NCBI GenBank assembly: GCA_002104905.1
Contig: MCFE01000752.1
Location: forward strand, 1-39,242
Source: Basidiobolus meristosporus CBS 931.73
Lineage: Eukaryota > Fungi > Basidiobolomycota
Direction: 5' to 3'
Length of the DNA stretch: 39,242 nucleotides
Part shown: piece after piece, positions 6,738 through 21,073 of the stretch
Position numbering within the stretch: position 1 is the first letter of the stretch
Layout: every line of letters starts with the position of its first letter
Notes under the pieces: generated by a model
Told to the model about the DNA's origin: nothing
Seen by the model: only the letters and a program-made list of their open reading frames with translations
Databases searched by the model: none
Position numbers and translations under genes: made by a program

Positions 6738-9700
6738 TTACCGTTGATGCTTCCTGAGTAAGGTTTCAAAATCATCTTCCACATAGCCCTGTTGGCCCTC
6801 TGCGTCGTAATCAAGATCCCCGCCACCAGGTTCAGATCCACCAGAGGCCTCTTTGGCTTTGTTTTTCTTCCGTTTCTTCTTCTTGCTCTTCGCTTTCCGT
6901 GAGGCGGTTGTTCCGGTCAACGCCTCTACTTCTGCAGGAGCAATATGCGGGTATTTGCAGTCCGGCTTGGTGCACACACCAGTACTAGCAAATGTGAAAC
7001 AGTATCCGGCTGGGCCAGGAAGCCTCGGAGGAAATGTATATGGTACTTGGTCCGGGGGCCCATTCCAGGCTGCAGGTATGTACGGGATGGTCTTTAGGTC
7101 AACGGCCACTGGGCTGGAGTGGGCCTTATGAAGATCATAATGGTTGGGTTGTGGTTTATCCGTAAGCGAGACATTTCTAAATATAGAGGCGTTGATTTCA
7201 CCCTTCGTGTGAGTGATGAGATAAATGCCGTTCGCAAAGCCTTGAACTTTCGTAAAGAGATAATGCAATAATTTACTGTGTGGGCGCGGCCAATTTCCAT
7301 TCGGTATGATGTCTACCATATTCCGGCGCTCCACCTTTACTAATCTACCTGAGAGTGCGTCTATTCTGCCGACCATCAGGCTGGCATCCCCACGTATGAA
7401 CGTATGAATCCACCAGCGCGCCTTCTCCTCCGCAACCACATCCTCGAAGCCATGATCGAGATGATATTCCATCTTGGTCTTGATCCCAACCAACTTTGAC
7501 TTGTTCTCCGGCCCATTGCTCTTGATAAATCCATGAATTTTGCATCGAATCAATACAGTGAAGCTTCCGAATGTCCATAAGGTATAAGTTGTATCATCCA
7601 TATTTTCTGGATTGGTCAGATTGGATTTGTGCTGCGAAACATCAGAACCCGGAAGTTTGTCGATTTTACCAGTTGCTTCTGGTGCACAGGTGTTTGGGCT
7701 GGGCTCAGGATTGGTACATTCTGGATCGTGCAACTCAGACTGGATTTGAGTCGAGCTGTCGTTACTGGACGCCGTGTTGTTGTTCAGCGTAGCATTGGTG
7801 GTGGTGGGAAGCGAGTTGAGATTCTCAGGAGCGCTTGGTGGGATATTTGAAGTGGCGTCGGGTGGAATGGCTGAAGGAGCCTCATGTGGCATATCTGAAG
7901 GATTCGATGCATTATGGCTTGGCGATGTGACGTGTTGTGCTTGGTTCTCCATGACGGGTTTTTCAGCAATACTGTTGATGCCATTAGTTTTCACAAACAT
8001 ACTTTTGAAGGCCGCGTTGAAGAACTGCTGATTCCTGGAGCGAGGAGTCACGGATTTTTTCAGAAGTGGCTTGTCTATAAATATCACTTTCTTGGTTTGC
8101 CCGTCTGATAAAGTAATTTCTTTGACTACTACGGGGATTTCGCATTCACTATCCAATGATGCTTGTAAAGCAACTAATGCAGAAAGGCCACCGGATGATA
8201 TAACGATATCTACATTATGCTTGGTCACGAGATCTTGAACATATGGATCCTTGCTAACCACTGGAGCCTTCTTCTTACTCCACGAGTTGGAGCTTTCGGG
8301 TGGGTTAAGAGAGCTTTGCTGAGGGCTTTCGGGTGGAATATAGTTTTCCCAGCATTTCTTGTTGATAGTAATCTCAAGGGGTTGTTGGAAAAATGGTAGG
8401 TCAAGTTGATGACAGTTGCCCACTCGCAACAATGTTTGCTTGTAAGATAGTACAGGCTCTCGGGGTGAAGGTGCGCCTAGACGTAAGCCGACTGTATGCA
8501 AAAACTCATAATGGCGAGGATACTGTTGCAGAATACGTTGACGATCAACTTCGAGTTTCTGTTGAATCTGCTTTGCTATATTTTCGTCAAGTATAAACAA
8601 CCTATCTTTAGTAGTCTCGTATTGCCATTTATGAAAGAGTTCCCTTTCTTGATCAATGCGTTGGCGTAAGCGCATATATAATGTATGATCAGCGTCCGAG
8701 AGCAGCGTGTTATTCTTCTCCGAAAGCATATGGATTTTTAAGAATTTCAAATGATCCTCCTTCGTAAGTGAAGAGATAGGAATCGATGGTCTCTTCGTGT
8801 CATTGGCCGATCTGGTGGATGAGGATGGAGATGAGCAGGTTTGTTGGGAGAGGACTGTTGATGTTTCTGAAGGCAGCTCTGAAGTTGGTAACACTGTTCC
8901 ACCAAGAGAGGAGAGAGCAATTAGCATGTCGGTTGGAATGGCTTGTGGGAATGGTCGAGTTGCCTCATAATTAATGATGCCTTGAGGTTTCTCTTTTGCG
9001 CTGGGTACTTCAGTTATTTTCTCGATAAGACTATCAACAGATTGAATCTCTTGTACTGGCTTTTCAACCTCTCTTTCGTCAGCAACTTTTCTCTCTGGCG
9101 CAGCATCTGTGTTGGGTCGTTGGGCAACTTCACATTCAGTGGAGTCGATATTGTCTTTCTCTAACATCGATTTGTTGGTCGCTATAAATTGTGAGGGAAG
9201 ATTCTCAGTATTGCCGGTACATATTGTATCGGTATGCTCAGGGCCATTGGGAGAGACGTTCGATTGGTTTGTAAATGGAGTGATTATATCGCACATAGAG
9301 CCGCCAACGTCGACTACCTCCTCAGTTATGAGTGAATCCTCTATGATACTAATCGCCTGAGGGACTCCAGCTAACAGATAATACACACATTAAAAAAACC
9401 CCAATCGATTTGCTTAGCAAGATGACATACCTGGTTGGCTCGACTCATTTGATGCTTCACCATTTTCTTTACTTTTCCTTTGCTCGGAATCACTGGTTGG
9501 TTTTATGACTGGCGAATCCGGTTTCCTGAAATCTTCGATCGAATTGTCCTTAGATGTTACTGTTTGCATGTTTGCCTGCTTCATCAATGACGCAGGCTCG
9601 AAAGATTGTGTCGTTGTCTTCGCTTTTCGAAGAGGTGGGAGGGTAGGTGACATTGGAGATGGAAGATTCTTCAGTAGGAGAAAATCTTCTGATGATTGAG

Positions 9701-11493
9701 ATGGAGGAGGCGTTTTAGATTGTTTGAATGATGAGCTCTTTTTCCGTGGTTGTACATCCGTTGGCAATTCCTCCTGCTCCGGCCTAACTGTGACCTCCAC
9801 AGTAGAAGTAGGTTCAGGATTTGCGGACAGGTGACTTTCAGAGGACTTCTTTATTTTTTTGGAGGTAGTAGAATCGGTAGACTTCTTGCGCTTTTTGGTA
9901 ACCTTGCTGGAGGCTTTTTCACTAATATTCGAGTCTACTTGGATGTTATTAACATTCTCGGTTTGCGAATCTATCCACATTTGCCCCTTGTTGGCTGGAA
10001 GAACAGTGGCTGTTTCGTGACCCATAGAGTTCTGACTTGAATCCAAGAGCATGTAGTTACTGGTCTGCAAGTTACGGATTGTCGTTTTAAGATCGGAAAT
10101 TTCGATTTGTTGCTCAGTGAACACATCTTGCAACACGCGCTTTGCTTTCTCTAACTTGTCTATTTCACCTCGTAACTGTGCAATGATTGATGGATCAAAG
10201 CCTGCGTTAGAATGTTTGACTGCATTCGGCTCCGGTAGCTTTTTGGCTGTCTTCAGTTCACTAATAGTATGTTCTTGCTTTGTGAGTAAAGATTTTGCAG
10301 CATGGAGCTTTTTCTTCAGGCCCTCAGCTTCTACTTGATGTTTAGTAGCCTCAATATTCAGTTTCTTCTCAAACTCTGACTGGGCTTTACGAGATGCATC
10401 CTGTAGCTCATTGATCAAATCTTCCTGCCTTCTGAAATTACTTTCAAGTTCGTGATAACGCTTATCTACGCTAACTTGCTGCTCTTTTGTAATCTCCAGT
10501 TGGGTTTTCAAGTCAGAAATCTCCTCCTTCATCTGATTAATTTTTGATTCAGACTCATCATCACTGACATTATCAATCTGCTCTCGTAACAGCTCGTTCT
10601 CCAACTTCAACTCATTAATAAGATCCTCTCTATAATCGGTATACATTAGGACCTGTGTAGTACGCTAAACAAACCAAATTCGCACTTACTTTGCCTCCAA
10701 TTCAACTTTCAAATCGTCCGAAATAGAGTTCTTCTTTTCGCCATCTTTTAACTTGAGTCCTATTGACTGATTTTCCTTTTCCAACTGTTTGACACGCGCT
10801 TTCAGCTGTTCACAGAGCGATTTTTCATTCTTCTCTTGTGTTCCTCTGAGATATGCAACAAACTTTAAATCACTGAAGGCATACCATACATTAAATAATT
10901 CAGCTTTTACCTTGATTCCAAGTCCTTGGTTAACTTGTGAATTTGTTTTTTCTGGTCTTCCACTAAATTCCGGAATGGCTCCAACTCTTCCAGTTGATAC
11001 TGAAGCTGATTTTTCAGAAGCTTAAGGTTGAAATTGCCGACATTAGATCAATTAAGAGACGATAAGAAACCGAAATTGGTTACCTCCAGTGAGGCAAACT
11101 TGGATTTCCATTTTTCCATCTCCTCGCGTAAAGAAACGCTGACTTTCTCTTTCTCCGATGAAGAGGTTTGGCATTGGTTCAGTGCGTCTTTCAAACGTGC
11201 AATCTCATCTTTGTATACTACTTCCTGGTGAACCGATCTTAAAGTAGAGCTTTTTGTCTCTTGTAACTCTTCTTGCAGCTTCTTGATGGTTTCTTTCGCT
11301 TTCTTATTTTCTATCAAGGGATTTGTAGTTCAATACGAGAAGGTTTCAAACAAATGCCACCAAACAATGTACCTTCTTCTTTCACGTCAAATATTTTCAA
11401 CAATTTGTTGGTGTTGATGATTCGCTCTTTGATCGCCTGTATGTTCTCTTCGGGTGAGACAGTTTTTGGTTTACTCTTCTCCTCGTTAGACAT
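6738..11493 (-). CDS. Little elongation complex protein: ICE1-like N-terminal coiled coil joined to ICE2/NARG2 homology region and a C-terminal CCCH finger
   Basis: ORF 6738-9386 has ICE2 motifs (SKDP..LV.K...DIVISS, EIPV.V, VIFIDKPL..K..T.R.RNQ.F; NARG2_C-like LWTFG.F.VLIRC, KMEY, RWW.HTFIR) and C-x8-C-x4-C-x3-H. It is joined in frame to the coiled-coil ORF 9414-10646 by intron 9430-9371 (60 nt, GTATGT..TTAG). Further in-frame exons extend to ATG 11493 (e.g. intron 11372-11311). Confidence 0.8.
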
Positions 11494-12060
11494 GCTGACA
11501 TGAAGATGCACGCTCTTGAGAAATCCGAAAGGCTCGATTCTAATTTTCTTCCCTTGCAAAAAGAAAAAAACGATCTAAGGAATTTCCAACACTAATACTA
11601 AAGGAGGGACAACTTGGAAAATTCGAACTTGCACCTAGTGTTAAATATCAGAAAATATCAATATCTTGAAGGTATGAACTTTTTTTTCGCAGTCCAATTA
11701 CTTTTTAATCAGCATTCAATGTCAAGTTTGTGATGTATTTCAGAGTGCCTTTTGATCCATTTTGATTGGTGCTGATCTCCGTTGGTATTGCTGATATCAA
11801 TTCCGATGAATATTTCAGAAGCACGACTGTCAGAAGTTGAATGAGATGATCCATTTTATTCATACCCAGGGCATATGATACCTGCACGTATATTTTGGAC
11901 TGCATTGCTGAGGGAGCCGTTAAAAAAAATACTTCTTGGCATAAAAGGCTTCTAAGGGATTTTGTTGATCGATGACGGTTGTGTAATTTGGTTCACCACC
12001 GGGAGGAAGTGTCTTGAGTGTTCTCGTATGTTCAAGAAAGAGTCATAGCACTCGGCTTAC

Positions 12061-12423
12061 CTAGAGAAACCACGAGAAGCCTGCTTCAAGAAGCAACCGT
12101 TATTCTTCTTAGCAGTTTTGGAATTGGTCCTTGTTCGTTGACCACGTACTGGTAAGTCAATGTGCGTCTCTTACTAACGTACGAGTTTGTTTGACGAAGT
12201 TGCAATATTAACTTGCCTCTCAAATCGCTCTCGATAGTCATATTGGTGAGAAGGCCACTTAGTGAGCTAAGCAATACTCAGATTAACCAGCTAAGCTTAC
12301 ACTCCTTGTGGATACTTAATTTGCTGCCCAGGCCTTCAGCGATGGTATGGCCAATAGCATCAAAGTAAGTAAAGGCACGTATAACTTCTTATCAGGCAAA
12401 TTCACACTAGGGAGATGAAGCAT
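12061..12423 (-). pseudogene. Decayed nuclear gene for mitochondrial ribosomal protein uS13m (SWS2/RPS13-like)
   Basis: MLHLPSVNLPDKKL / FTYFDAIGHTIAEGLGSKLSIHKECKL / MTIESDLR / LPVRGQRTRTNSKTAKK. The uS13 signature is clear but needs two frameshifts and read-through of a TGA at 12278-12280. Confidence 0.8.
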
Positions 12424-13520
12424 AGCGTATCAATATTCCAACAAGCAGAAGCACGCTTTATTGAATATCTCATGATATTCGGTGTTTGATCGACTCTTCC
12501 CCACACCATTGATAGACTTTTCACCCCTGGTTCTTAATCTTGCTTACAACTCTGCTTAAATATGAGTTTATCAACGCTAGATTGTCCAAGTTGAAAATCC
12601 TACAAATATGATCGCAGTTGGATATTAATCCGAGGATTGCCTCAACGCAATTGGAGATATTTCGGGATCTTGATATCAAGATATAAACACTCCTGAATCA
12701 TACCCCAGCCACTAATATTGAATTCAAGGAAATGTTGCTGGGTTCAGCTTATAAGCCCCAAGATGTGCAATGTACCTTTTGAGAATTATTATGTCCCTTT
12801 CAGACACATACGTGAAAACAGCTGTATTAGGTGGTTATAGAGTAAGATGCAATGATAGAATTGCTAAAATTGGAATGAGTTTCTCCACAAAATTCTCTTG
12901 AAGACATTATGCAACAAAGAATACCTTTATTCGTTGAATTGTGGGCTGCTTGAATACATTTCTACACCCCGCACCCTCCTTGCGCAAGCACTACGACCCT
13001 CGAGGTTCAGGTGAGCAAGAGTTTGCTGAGTACTGGTAGACAACAATGAGCATTGGGGTGTTCTTTTTCATTCCAGGTGTTACATATATACTATAGCATC
13101 CATTGCTATAATGGAAACACGATATGATGCCAGTTGTGGGACAAAAGTAGCAAGTTATCAACTGCAAAGTCTGCGACACAAGGAAACTATCTAGATTGAA
13201 AGCTAGCCAATCAAAGAGACAAATAGCTCATTCATCTCAATAGGGGCCGTATTCCAAACAATATGGGAATATATCAAATATCAAGAGGAATTGAATTCAA
13301 AATCGGCCCTCTGAAATTTCTAGAAAAATATAGGGAAATGATCAAATGATAAGCTAGATTTAAGGTAAGTAACTTGTTCACATAAGTTACATCCACAACA
13401 TTTGGGACTCCAAGGTCTTTTCTCTCAAGAATTTTATTCGTGCTGCGAAAAACCCATTTATCATATTTTAGAACACGTTAGCATATACTCGACTGACATC
13501 TTTGTTGTTTCCCATTTGCC

Positions 13521-13784
13521 ATGGAGTGCCTCAAGTGGTTTATTCCACTGTTTCTTCTTCCGCAACCTAGCGCTTCGCCATACTTTATATATTTATTTTT
13601 GTTTTCTTATATCCTACACAGTAAGCCTTGTGTCTATTGTACGATTCTATTAGTAGCATTACTAGGCTCTACTTGCTACTGGGGGACCGATCATTGTTGG
13701 GTTGACACAAACCACATGGATATTTTCTCGCCTCGAAACATTTCGCTATTAACCCCACTCCCGCTTCAAGAAGAGCAGATATAA
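13521..13784 (+). CDS. BC10/BLCAP (bladder cancer-associated protein) family small membrane protein
   Basis: MECLKWFIPLFLLPQP...FLFSYILHSKPCVYCTILL..STCYW matches the BLCAP pattern MxCLxWxxPxxLxP...KPCxxC. Intronless, 87 aa. Confidence 0.8.
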   Translation: MECLKWFIPLFLLPQPSASPYFIYLFLFSYILHSKPCVYCTILLVALLGSTCYWGTDHCWVDTNHMDIFSPRNISLLTPLPLQEEQI

Positions 13785-15523: not shown

Positions 15524-17118
15524 TTAAAGTCCACTCTTCTTGCGTAGTTTTTCTCCCTTAAACTTAACCCACAGCATTGCTGTGATAATAGCCAAGTTCA
15601 GTACTGCAAGTAAGACGGAGAGATATCTGACGCCAATACGTTGAATCAGTGGCTCGGCTGTGATTGATAAGATGGCTGCTATGGTCATCCTAACAAAATT
15701 CGCAGCTGCTGATGCGCTGGCGCCACGACCGGGCACAGCATCAACCAAGTAGGTTGTTGCTGATGTTGATATTTGCATTAAGCCAAAGCAGAGAATACCA
15801 AATCCGATAATCGGTGCTACTATATATACGCCATAGTATACAGTCCATCCGAAGATTAGTGCGCCCCCGGGTACTATCAAATACCCGCTGAGCCACATGT
15901 GTGGTGCTAAGCGATCTTCAGGAATATTGGTTCCACCACGACGTTTGCTTGCTTGTCGCATGAAATAGTCAGAGAGTACACCGCCAACACAACTTCCCAA
16001 TATGTTGCCGCAACCGGCACCGAGATACGTAATCCCTGTTTGCGCAGAGGATAACCCATAGACATGTGAAAACAGCTCAGGCAAGATAGTTTCTATCGTA
16101 AACATTGTGCCAAAGGATATACCTGTCTCGATAGACACAATAACAAGAAACCAGTGCTTTAGGAGAGCAAGCGAGGCAAATGGGTTCATTCGCTTGGTAG
16201 TAGTTCGAGTATTGCGTGATACATGGTTAGGAATCTTGATTTTCACGGTCTCATGTATATCCTGGGCTTCCGACGCAATAGTATTTGTGCCCTTTTGCTG
16301 TAAGTTACTACTGTCCGAAGGCAATTCTAACCATTCGTCTTCTCTCCTGTATGTCTCTGGCAGAGCAAAGAACATGATAAAGAAGATAAAGACTCCAAAT
16401 GCGCCGCAGAAATAGAATGTGGATCTCCAACCAAATCTAGACGTTAAAAAGCCTCCGATGGTGGGTCCCTAATACGGAACATCGTTAGTCAACTGTCTAG
16501 AATTAAATAAGAAGCAATCAAGGTACTCACGATCAAGGGGCCTATGTATTGGCCTAAGAATAGCAAACCCATAGACATGCCTCTCTCATGTATGCCAAAG
16601 CAATCCGCAATTGTCCCTGGGCTCAAGCTATAAAGAGAACTGGATCCACATGACTGGATACAGCGGAGTATAATCAAGAGGGTGGTGCTGTTGACGAAAG
16701 CTGCGCCAATAGTGGCGCCAATGAATATCAGGACAGACACCAAGTAGAGTACTCTTCGTATACCATAGTGATCGGATAGACTGGCCCAGAAAACGGGTGC
16801 GATACCCATGAACAAAATAAACAATGATACAGTAGCATTAACGGCTATACTCGATGCATTCAAGTCTCTGCTAATGGCTGGAAGCGCAGGGAAATAAATG
16901 GTAGAAGCCAAAGGCGCCAGCATTCCACCAATTCCTAGTTGTGCCACGATAAGTGTCTTGCTTGTTTTTGAGAATGTACGAGGGTCCTTTTCAATTACGG
17001 GATTGGGCGTAAGTTGACGTTTAAAGTAGGCAACGATTTTTTCTCCCATGGTGTTATTGTGGGAGCTTTTCTCAACGGTTACTTCGGGGGTAGCTTGTGT
17101 ATGACTTGGATTATTCAT
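15524..17118 (-). CDS. MFS transporter, DHA1-type multidrug/Qdr-Dtr1-like
   Basis: STIYFPALP, PVFWASLSDHYGIRR, LRCIQSCG, GTIADCF..HERG, GPLI|GPTIGG...GWRSTF, LPETY, GGVLSD, PEDRL, YLVDA. Intron 16530-16469 (62 nt) joins the two ORFs in frame. Start taken at MNNPSH (17118). Confidence 0.9.
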
Positions 17119-19933
17119 AGTTAGGTTTTTTAAGGTTGGGTTACTTGTTTTTAGTTGTTTAGATATAGCCTGAAGGACTAAGTCGGCTATGAATGCAGGA
17201 GTATAGGTCAATGCTGATATATGGGTTATGGAGATCAATGCTTGCAGAGTGGCACTCTATTTATGTAGATCGAAGACGACCATTCTAATCTTAGAGAAGG
17301 GTACAATCATTTAGGATTTCAACCCTTTCCATCAATATCATAGAATTAGATGTGTTGGCGAGTATTTGGGGGTTTTCCGATCGGTAAACCATTGGGTATG
17401 TAGCCCTAACCTTAAGAAAGGTTCTATGGTAAGAAATGGCAGGAGGTTCTGTAGTTACAATATGTGGTTTTGTCATGCCTATCATTCGTGGTTCCCAGAG
17501 AAACCTTATGCGTAAGCGTTCATTGATGGGTAATTTTGATAGACGTCAAACCGATTCAATGATAAGGTTGGCTCTAATGCAGAGCGCACGAATACCACAC
17601 GCCTCACTATGTGCATATAAAACTGAATATCTCGCAAATCAGACTGGTTTTCCTCGCTAATCATGGAAGTTCTAATTGTGGATAATCCCCAATACCATTA
17701 ACTTAGCATATCTGATGAACAAACAGCCACAGCTCAAGTTGTGAATATTCCGAATATTCAGGGGATTGGTTCCCTATAGCGGTTGCATGAAGCGCCAAGA
17801 TGTAAGTTAGGATTGGCCCGGGAGGGTTTAAGCCGCACCGAAGTGACCATTTGTTAAGTGAAAAATATTAATGTAATTCAGCAATGCTATAGCCTTCTAA
17901 CGTGGTTTGTGCTTGGCAGTGACTCAGAAGAGTCTATTCCGCCCAGAACATCTATTCATTCAGTAATGGGGAAACATAACCACTCCCAGTGCTAAGTGGG
18001 ACAGGTGAAAAGCCATCTGAGCGTCATGAAATCATCCCATACGATGTTATTCAAGATGCACAACGTTTCCCAAAATAGCTATACAACTGAGGTGTATGTT
18101 CTACGGATCAAACCCAAAGCCCATGAGTTGGTAGTATGTGGATCAATATTTTGAGAAGATCAATGCTGACAAAACAGGCCTACACAGCCGCTGATGAAGT
18201 AGGGATGCGATTGAAGTACTAGATACGCTGTCCAGGTTGGATGATTCATTTCCAGCAGGTGATCTAGATATGGGGGTGGCACTCCCTTGAGCTCTGATGG
18301 GCTAAAGCCCTCTATGCGAACAGGGGAGAGCTCACTTCGTTCAACATCAAATTGTGGGTGGGTTGCTTAGGAGAACATTTGGCCATCTTAAGGCTTTATC
18401 AGCTACGCAATAGCCCAGATAACCCAGAACCTCCTCTCACGACTCTGGCAGAACTACGAGCACAGATGATCTAATCACCTTCAATATTTTTCATGTAGCC
18501 ATAAATGGGCCGCACCACAAGAGTAAGGCTAAATGTACCCTCATAAATACCTGCGCACCCGATAACAGGTATGTGTCCACTTAGGAGAGGCTTCGCTCAT
18601 TGTTGATAATCCACCATTGGCTGATAGTTCGAATCGAGGATGAAACTTGGCCTAATCATCAGATGTGTTAGATGTACGTCTATGGCAACAGTATTGACAT
18701 AAACCATTCAGATCCGCCATAAATGGTCTCTATGGTTAGCTGTTCTGAAGCAATGCCCACTTTTACCAGTAGATGCAATTGTTGCCTACGTGTATACAGA
18801 GCAGTACTATATTCACCTTGGACGCACTGGATCTCTTTTTCATATGGTAGAGTGTTGATGGCCGGTGGGAGTTGATTTGTCATAGTAAATCCCCCATCCC
18901 TGGTAGACCGACATGCCTGCAAAGCGCGCTACAGATCCCGTACGATTCCTGTTTGTGGGCAAAGCTAAGCTCTCCACCCAAGAAACCTTGATTGATATGC
19001 CACTGCTGAAGCCATAGGATAGAAGGGCAGATATGCATCTATCGAGCAACATCCTCGTTCTGGTAGATCAGATAAATGATGCTTTTGTGTTGTTTGTTAG
19101 GGCTCGTGTAATGCCACCATAAGTTTTACTTCTCTGAGTCCTGTCAATAACTTTTTCCTATTTGGGCTGGCCCATCAGTCAACCGTAAACCAAATTAAGC
19201 TTCTGATTGTCGCCTGGGTATTTGGCACTGGAAGTTAGGAAGTGTGGGTGTGACGCATGAGCATTTGCTTGAAATGATGTCATTTGCCTGTCATTGTAGC
19301 AAGGTGCCCTATGCGCTTGACAGAAAAGTGGATTCTAACGCTCTCGCGTGGCAGCCAACTTACTAGTTACACATATGGAGTGTTAGGTTGCTTACTCATA
19401 ACTCTGTGCGGGGATCATCGGGCTGTATTACAACCTCATCAGTTTTTCACTTCTACTCCTTTCAACGGCAAAAATACTTGAGAATAGTGGGACACCTTGC
19501 CAAACAATAGCCAGAGGCTCTCATTTTAGAAACCACTGTACAAACTGTCTTACGTAATGATTGGTTCAGATATTGTTTCTCTTGAGCGTATAAGATTGTG
19601 GAAAATGGATTGCCAATGCCCCGTCTGAATGTCTATGATGTCTTTTGTTTCAATTACAACGATTTACTTTTGATTTAATTTCAAGGTAAACATGTGCTAT
19701 AGGACGTGAGGATGGTGAGCGTAAATATGTATGGTACAGTTGACTTTTGGGGTCTCAAATAATAAATACAGGCCAAAGGGATACTCCTCGATGTGTAGCG
19801 TTAAGGTTGTGCAAAGGTTCACGTCGCCGTAAAGAAATTCGGGACACACAATTAGCTTCAAAAAGACGATCAAAATCTCGACCTTGGCAATGTCCTATTA
19901 GCATTATATTTCGGTCCTTGATTTTGGTGGGTT

Positions 19934-21073
<1,140 letters not shown>

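Follow-up and report, generated by a model that had tools for sequence, protein, structure and literature searches.

The question raised by this locus is whether a single fungal gene joins two subunits of the little elongation complex (LEC), ICE1 and ICE2, in one polypeptide. The gene lies at 11493-6738 on the minus strand of contig MCFE01000752.1 of Basidiobolus meristosporus CBS 931.73, of which positions 1-39,242 are the window analysed here, and an earlier note on this DNA had proposed such a fusion. We find that it is likely to be a one-gene Basidiobolus orthologue of ICE2/NARG2 (LEC subunit 2) with a coiled-coil head added in its own lineage. LEC has been written about as an animal device for small nuclear RNA (snRNA) transcription by RNA polymerase II, and the presence of ICE2 orthologues in Zoopagomycota, Mucoromycota, Glomeromycotina and a chytrid implies that the ICE2 subunit predates the animal-fungal split. 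The family itself is known and its early-diverging fungal members are visible in databases; our literature search for fungal NARG2, or for LEC outside animals, found no paper describing them, and the architecture of head, motif and finger set out below is unusual.

The identity of the C-terminal half rests on exon 6 (6738-9370, minus strand, as for all features of the gene given below; 2,633 nt including the stop), which encodes a body homologous to ICE2 over approximately residues 205-800 of the exon. Pfam NARG2_C (PF10505) matches exon-6 residues 588-765 (7074-7607) well above its gathering score (E 4.5e-21; 75.7 bits vs 30.8), and the exon also matches an Acropora "little elongation complex subunit 2-like" protein (E 2.9e-33, 62% of exon 6 covered) and Ice2 of the mantis shrimp Oratosquilla (E 6.9e-11). 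An alignment of six fungal and animal sequences is collinear, with 22 invariant columns in two blocks that flank a variable low-complexity insert. Block 1 (exon-6 residues 205-470; 7959-8756; VVSKDP...VDIVISSGGL...IFIDKPL) holds 16 of these 22 columns, and is 43% identical to an Endogone protein over 99% of its length (E 4.2e-56). The first ~200 residues of exon 6, by comparison, are poorly conserved and predicted to be disordered. The ICE2/NARG2-like C-terminus recognised in the earlier note is borne out by the domain match, the animal ICE2 matches and the collinear alignment. With cnidarian and crustacean ICE2, the Basidiobolus protein has in common NARG2_C, collinearity over ~600 residues, the blocks VSxDP, (V/I)(V/L)ISS, FIDKP and ExxxxW, and a K-rich cluster near the C-terminus. 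Its length, however, is roughly double that of the animal ICE2 proteins retrieved (762-843 aa), and the animal ICE2 sequences examined are without its ~400-residue coiled coil, its LLxNLPxPxSPTLPP linker motif and its CCCH finger. Judged from sequence, the gene is the Basidiobolus ICE2/NARG2 orthologue, and we would expect it to act in snRNA transcription.

To place this protein among fungi, we compared it with the ICE2-like proteins of Endogone sp. (BC937DRAFT_87358, P0004), Funneliformis geosporum (15400_t:CDS:10, P0001) and the chytrid Quaeritorhiza haematococci (HK102_001292, P0005). Word-index searches with the whole of exon 6 and with the alignment (8,000 candidates scored each, low-complexity words dominant) gave 3 matches each; a search restricted to block 1 retrieved the Endogone and chytrid proteins. 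The ICE2 cores of the three are 31-41% identical to that of Basidiobolus, and the shared features extend to the linker motif (Endogone and the chytrid), the CCCH finger (Endogone and Funneliformis) and a DDFExLL-type tail (all three). Unlike the Basidiobolus protein, none has an N-terminal coiled coil, their N-termini being short or disordered. A metagenome scan added 14 more loci, including cnidarian-like full open reading frames (ORFs) of 765-781 residues and several fungal-like contigs. Four metagenomic loci (L013, L014, L016 and L017; contig G+C 0.26-0.29) are ICE2-like fragments, probably of fungal lineages, and the best segment of L014 shares 57% identity with the Basidiobolus protein. 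The wider ancestry that had been proposed for LEC therefore holds for ICE2, which is present in early-diverging fungi (Basidiobolus, Endogone, Funneliformis and Quaeritorhiza), and finds no support for ICE1.

Several short elements outside the core are conserved along with it. A short linear motif, DFLLLKNLPSPMSPTLPPL (9630-9686; consensus LLxNLPxPxSPTLPP), lies in the 3' part of exon 5; it is identical in Basidiobolus ranarum and has 11 invariant positions with Endogone and the chytrid (L003:7920-7994). In Endogone it is found inside the annotated ICE2-like protein, and a variant, PRPLSPGLPS, occurs in two metagenomic fungal contigs (L008/L009). The motif is present once per locus and always N-terminal of the ICE2 core. 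Its chytrid copy, LLSRISNLPAPVSPTLPP, sits upstream of the annotated start of HK102_001292 in the same open frame (L003:7368-8114); because the annotated protein starts at an internal Met while frame and motif continue upstream, we conclude that this model is N-terminally truncated. Ahead of the motif, a basic cluster, TKKRKKSTDSTTSKKIKK (9846-9899), is nearly invariant between the two Basidiobolus species and is probably a nuclear localisation signal; comparable clusters precede the motif in Endogone, the chytrid and L008.

On the other side of the core, a CCCH-type finger, CFTFASTGVCTKPDCKYPH (6945-7001; C-x8-C-x4-C-x3-H), fits the zf-CCCH spacing C-x7-8-C-x4-5-C-x3-H; its spacing is identical in Endogone and Funneliformis, and it has no counterpart in the chytrid model or the animal ICE2 proteins examined. 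The Basidiobolus finger scores weakly in Pfam (13.2 bits, E 0.076), and that of Funneliformis passes the cutoffs of both zf-CCCH (20.7 vs 20.5) and zf-CCCH_10 (27.3 vs 27). The human LEC associates in trans with a CCCH-type finger protein, ZC3H8 (PMC7044329; PMC6057032), and the parallel with a finger in cis is attractive, though no more than an analogy. ZC3H8 is a separate protein with three fingers; Basidiobolus ICE2 has one weakly scoring finger. After the finger come a lysine-rich cluster, KAKSKKKKRKKNKAK (6852-6896), which is K-rich at the same place in 6/6 aligned proteins and is probably a second nuclear localisation signal, and an acidic-hydrophobic C-terminal tail, DDFETLL (6756-6776), which may be a docking peptide. 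The tail is conserved in four fungal lineages, as D[DE]F[EA]xLL at residues 1112-1118 of the Endogone protein and 675-681 of the chytrid protein and as DFATLL in Funneliformis. Coral ICE2 ends ...YDDVDF at the place aligned with it.

The complete gene has six exons, with the ATG at 11493-11491, the stop at 6740-6738 and 1,481 codons; upstream of the ATG, the first in-frame stop is at 11577, with no in-frame ATG in between. Its introns are 62, 63, 65, 60 and 60 nt long, begin with GT and end with AG in 5/5 cases, and have a lower G+C content (0.31-0.38) than the exons (0.38-0.46). Exon 1 (11373-11493; 40 codons and 1 base) encodes MSNEEKSKPKTVSPEENIQAIKERIINTNKLLKIFDVKEE, the best-conserved part of the head, and is followed by intron 1 (11311-11372; 62 nt, GT..AG, phase 1), exon 2 (11084-11310; 227 nt, helical/coiled-coil composition) and intron 2 (11021-11083; 63 nt, GT..AG, phase 0). 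Exon 3 (10911-11020; 110 nt) shows strong heptad periodicity, and intron 3 (10846-10910; 65 nt, GT..AG, phase 2), exon 4 (10690-10845; 156 nt, coiled-coil composition) and intron 4 (10630-10689; 60 nt, GTAAGT..TAG, phase 2) lead to exon 5 (9431-10629; 1,199 nt), a single open frame that encodes the final ~200 residues of the helical head, followed by a disordered linker of ~200 residues. The two peptides that the earlier note had quoted from the N-terminus are found here, IQAIKERIINTNKLL in exon 1 and LQEELQETKSSTLRSVHQE in exon 2. Intron 5 (9371-9430; 60 nt, GTATGT..TAG, phase 1) contains an in-frame TAA at 9416-9414, and its removal joins ...SSQP to (A)GVPQAISII... in frame, in agreement with the canonical in-frame intron that had been described at this position.

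Whether the two sides of intron 5 belong to one gene can be judged by comparison with a second species. A phmmer search with exon 5 against 1.84 billion representative proteins returned one match, KAK9701952.1 (K7432_011475) of B. ranarum, and we used the orthologous locus in that species (L004; GCA_040143965.1, contig JASJQH010007766.1, gene at L004:6057-8374). All six exons are collinear there, with the ICE2 body truncated by the contig end, and exons 1-4 are equal in length in the two species. Amino-acid identity is 93% in exon 1 (L004:6057-6177), 73% in exon 2, 89% in exon 3, 57% in exon 4, 59% in exon 5 (against P0006) and 42% in the first 200 residues of exon 6. Within the codons of exons 1-4, identity is 76-100% at positions 1 and 2 and 33-75% at position 3 (0.85/0.88/0.43 for the three positions in exon 2 and 0.76/0.78/0.33 in exon 4), a signature of purifying selection on a protein.

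The introns tell the same story: 5/5 are at the same codon position and in the same phase in B. ranarum, where they are 102, 115, 92, 80 and 68 nt long. Intron 5 of B. ranarum (L004:8286-8353; donor GTTCGT) is 68 nt, which is not a multiple of three, so exons 5 and 6 do not share a genomic frame in that species and can be joined only by splicing. Past its acceptor the frame is open and conserved (EDPLILEEVIDIGGS vs EDSLITEEVVDVGGS), and the first Met comes ~147 codons downstream. Independently of B. ranarum, intron 5 falls between the linker motif and the ICE2 core, and since the two are in the same protein in relatives, both sides of the intron belong together. The head can be assigned to the ICE2 protein without invoking any intron, because exon 5, a single frame, encodes the family motif as well as the last 200 helical residues. 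On this comparative basis, the two halves are one gene.

We then asked what the head is and where else it occurs. It comprises ~400 residues, encoded by the small exons 1-4 and the first half of exon 5, with coiled-coil composition throughout. It includes a long alpha-helical, coiled-coil-like segment at exon-5 residues 2-199 (10032-10625), supported by an AlphaFold2 (AF2) model, heptad analysis and Atlas look-alikes. AF2 predicts helices at exon-5 residues 2-129 and 146-199, mostly with a predicted local distance difference test (pLDDT) score >90, and disorder at residues 200-399 (pLDDT <50). Heptad (3.5-residue hydrophobic) periodicity against shuffles gives z = 4.8 for exon 3 and z = 5.3 for the first 215 residues of exon 5. 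The earlier note had suggested a search for the fusion in relatives; B. ranarum has a gene joining head and ICE2, and no head was found in the ICE2-like genes of Endogone, Funneliformis, the chytrid or the metagenomic fungal contigs (L001, L002, L003 and L008/L009 among the fungal loci examined). The N-terminus of L008 consists of a short disordered stretch. A head encoded by its own gene upstream was also considered for the other fungi and rejected, the upstream neighbours of the ICE2-like genes being unrelated: a transposon-like ORF on the opposite strand in Funneliformis, a carbamoyl-phosphate synthase small chain gene 466 nt away in Endogone and, by eye, a SURF1-like gene in the chytrid. 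Given its absence elsewhere, the coiled-coil head is, on the loci compared, a Basidiobolus-lineage addition to an older fungal ICE2 protein. The strong conservation of exon 1 indicates a specific function at the extreme N-terminus.

Together, these observations suggest how the protein might be built and work. The older fungal ICE2 plan would have had a disordered N-terminus with a basic cluster, the putative docking motif LLxNLPxPxSPTLPP, a two-block core, one CCCH finger (as in Endogone and Funneliformis), a lysine-rich cluster and an acidic DDFExLL tail, and the Basidiobolus lineage would have added an alpha-helical coiled coil of ~400 residues at the front. The ICE2 core and motif may assemble with ELL/EAF-type factors on RNA polymerase II at small-RNA genes, the CCCH finger could contact nucleic acid in cis, and the coiled coil could dimerise the protein or tether a partner. 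The motif, finger and tail provide handles for finding ICE2 binding partners; the head, as a genus-level addition, is of limited general interest alone.

Some results weigh against a single ICE2 gene with an added head. The structure model of the ICE2 body is poor (mean pLDDT 39.7 with the 6-sequence alignment), and the splicing of every intron is deduced from comparison, not from RNA. The exons were searched singly, with exon 5 the one part of the head put through the large protein libraries, so that a distant relative of the first 200 residues could be missed. Finally, the deposited B. ranarum annotation divides the locus into separate gene models, one of 197 aa and K7432_011475 of 405 aa. 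The former corresponds to exons 1-3 plus read-through and the latter to exon 5 from an internal Met, running into intron 5; we regard these split models as an annotation error, and their merger is called for.

The in-frame stop in intron 5 raises the alternative that one gene has two outputs, the spliced form of 1,481 residues and, when intron 5 is retained, a coiled-coil-plus-motif protein of ~610 residues without the ICE2 core, which could regulate or compete with the full form. Intron retention is the common form of alternative splicing in fungi, and a retained intron 5 meets a stop in both species, 5 codons after the donor in B. meristosporus and 29 in B. ranarum. When an AT-rich intron is retained, however, a stop is to be expected by chance, and transcripts of this kind are usually decay targets; a gene with two outputs is unlikely.

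We consider it very unlikely that the N-terminal coiled coil descends from ICE1 (KIAA0947), making the protein an ICE1-ICE2 fusion with the LEC scaffold in one chain. The general layout has some appeal, in that N-terminal helices followed by long disorder resemble ICE1 as described, the head is physically joined to ICE2, the partner of ICE1, and exon 1 is unusually constrained (93% identity vs 57-89% in exons 2-5). The searches nevertheless gave no ICE1 match. With Pfam at E up to 1, exons 1-5 showed no ICE1, only weak generic coiled-coil families in exons 2-5 and nothing in exon 1. The Atlas look-alikes of exons 5 and 2 were generic coiled coils (Spindly, CENP-F, HOOK1, ERC, GOLGA2 and others) and did not include ICE1. 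PDB sequence searches of exons 1, 2 and 5 found no ICE1, and with exon 6 added nothing relevant was returned, neither an ICE2 nor an ICE1 structure. The exon-5 phmmer search found nothing outside Basidiobolus. The stretch spanning exons 1 and 2, which the earlier note had likened to ICE1, was searched as separate exons only. The putative human ICE1 strings of that comparison were sought in the full-text literature and no paper was found; they were not used as evidence.

The literature on ICE1 bears on the question as well. The conserved module of ICE1 is a C-terminal putative MIF4G domain of ~30 kDa (PMC5896957), and Pfam (E up to 1) detected no MIF4G domain in exons 1-5. The helices are separated from the ICE2 body by ~185 exon-5 residues, predicted to be disordered (pLDDT <50); this linker is too short and too low in complexity to leave room for a MIF4G-like domain. 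In human ICE1, residues 1191-2266 bind ICE2 and ELL and suffice for the core LEC, and residues 1-1190 bind CBP80 (PMC7044329). For the 1191-2266 segment, Pfam and AF2 reveal no segment comparable in size, nor any globular domain, ahead of the ICE2 body. Since ICE2 and ELL bind the C-terminal part of human ICE1, the interacting regions that the fusion had been proposed to mark would not be marked by joining an N-terminal coiled coil to ICE2. ICE1 has been reported missing from the fungi surveyed, with none found in Saccharomycotina or Basidiomycota (PMC6351623), and the absence of the head from all other fungal ICE2-like genes examined points to a late addition. On sequence grounds, an ICE1 origin of the head is thus unsupported, though not disproved. 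Highly improbable, too, is a single-chain LEC scaffold in which a diverged ICE1 remnant would be followed by the ICE2 core and by a CCCH finger standing in cis for ZC3H8; if true, an snRNA transcription module of the LEC type would be older than the animal-fungal split and would have been compacted in the Basidiobolus lineage.

We see very little chance that the locus holds two genes, one for a coiled-coil protein that stops at the TAA at 9414 and another for ICE2 that starts from the ATG at 9296-9294 (exon 6 codon 25): the TAA is in frame upon intron 5 retention, a Met is present 25 codons into exon 6, and automatic annotation split the B. ranarum locus with a 405-aa model that runs into the intron, yet the stop and the following start would be only ~118 nt apart, the ~147 codons past the acceptor in B. 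ranarum are Met-free and still open and conserved, the donor (GTATGT; GTTCGT in B. ranarum) and phase are kept despite unequal intron lengths, and in Endogone and the chytrid it is the ICE2 protein that carries the motif found here upstream of intron 5.

Around this one-gene ICE2 orthologue, gene order is conserved as well. Three upstream neighbours, namely a ribosomal protein S13/S18 gene, another conserved gene and the terminal part of a transporter-like gene, occur in the same order at the B. ranarum locus, and by this synteny the corresponding genes in the window are at 11926-12423, 13480-13783 and 15524-15742, all on the minus strand. The transporter-like gene, whose identity was judged by eye, comprises ORFs at 15524-17238 on the minus strand. 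Two further minus-strand ORFs were read by eye: that at 1143-1823, with a CCCH-finger-like CNFLH motif and an RS-rich tail, as a U2AF small subunit, and that at 19934-20629 as starting with the end of a forkhead DNA-binding domain.

The ICE2 gene has further features at its 5' end. Between the two Basidiobolus species, third-codon-position identity in exon 1 (11374-11493) is 75%, compared with 33-50% in exons 2-4, suggestive of a further constraint, on RNA or DNA, at the coding 5' end. B. ranarum shares (L004:6049-6051) an out-of-frame ATG 8 nt before the start codon (11499-11501, minus strand), which sits in the sole conserved stretch of the 5' flank, cttcATGtcagcATG; it may mark an overlapping upstream ORF or be a sign of leaky scanning.

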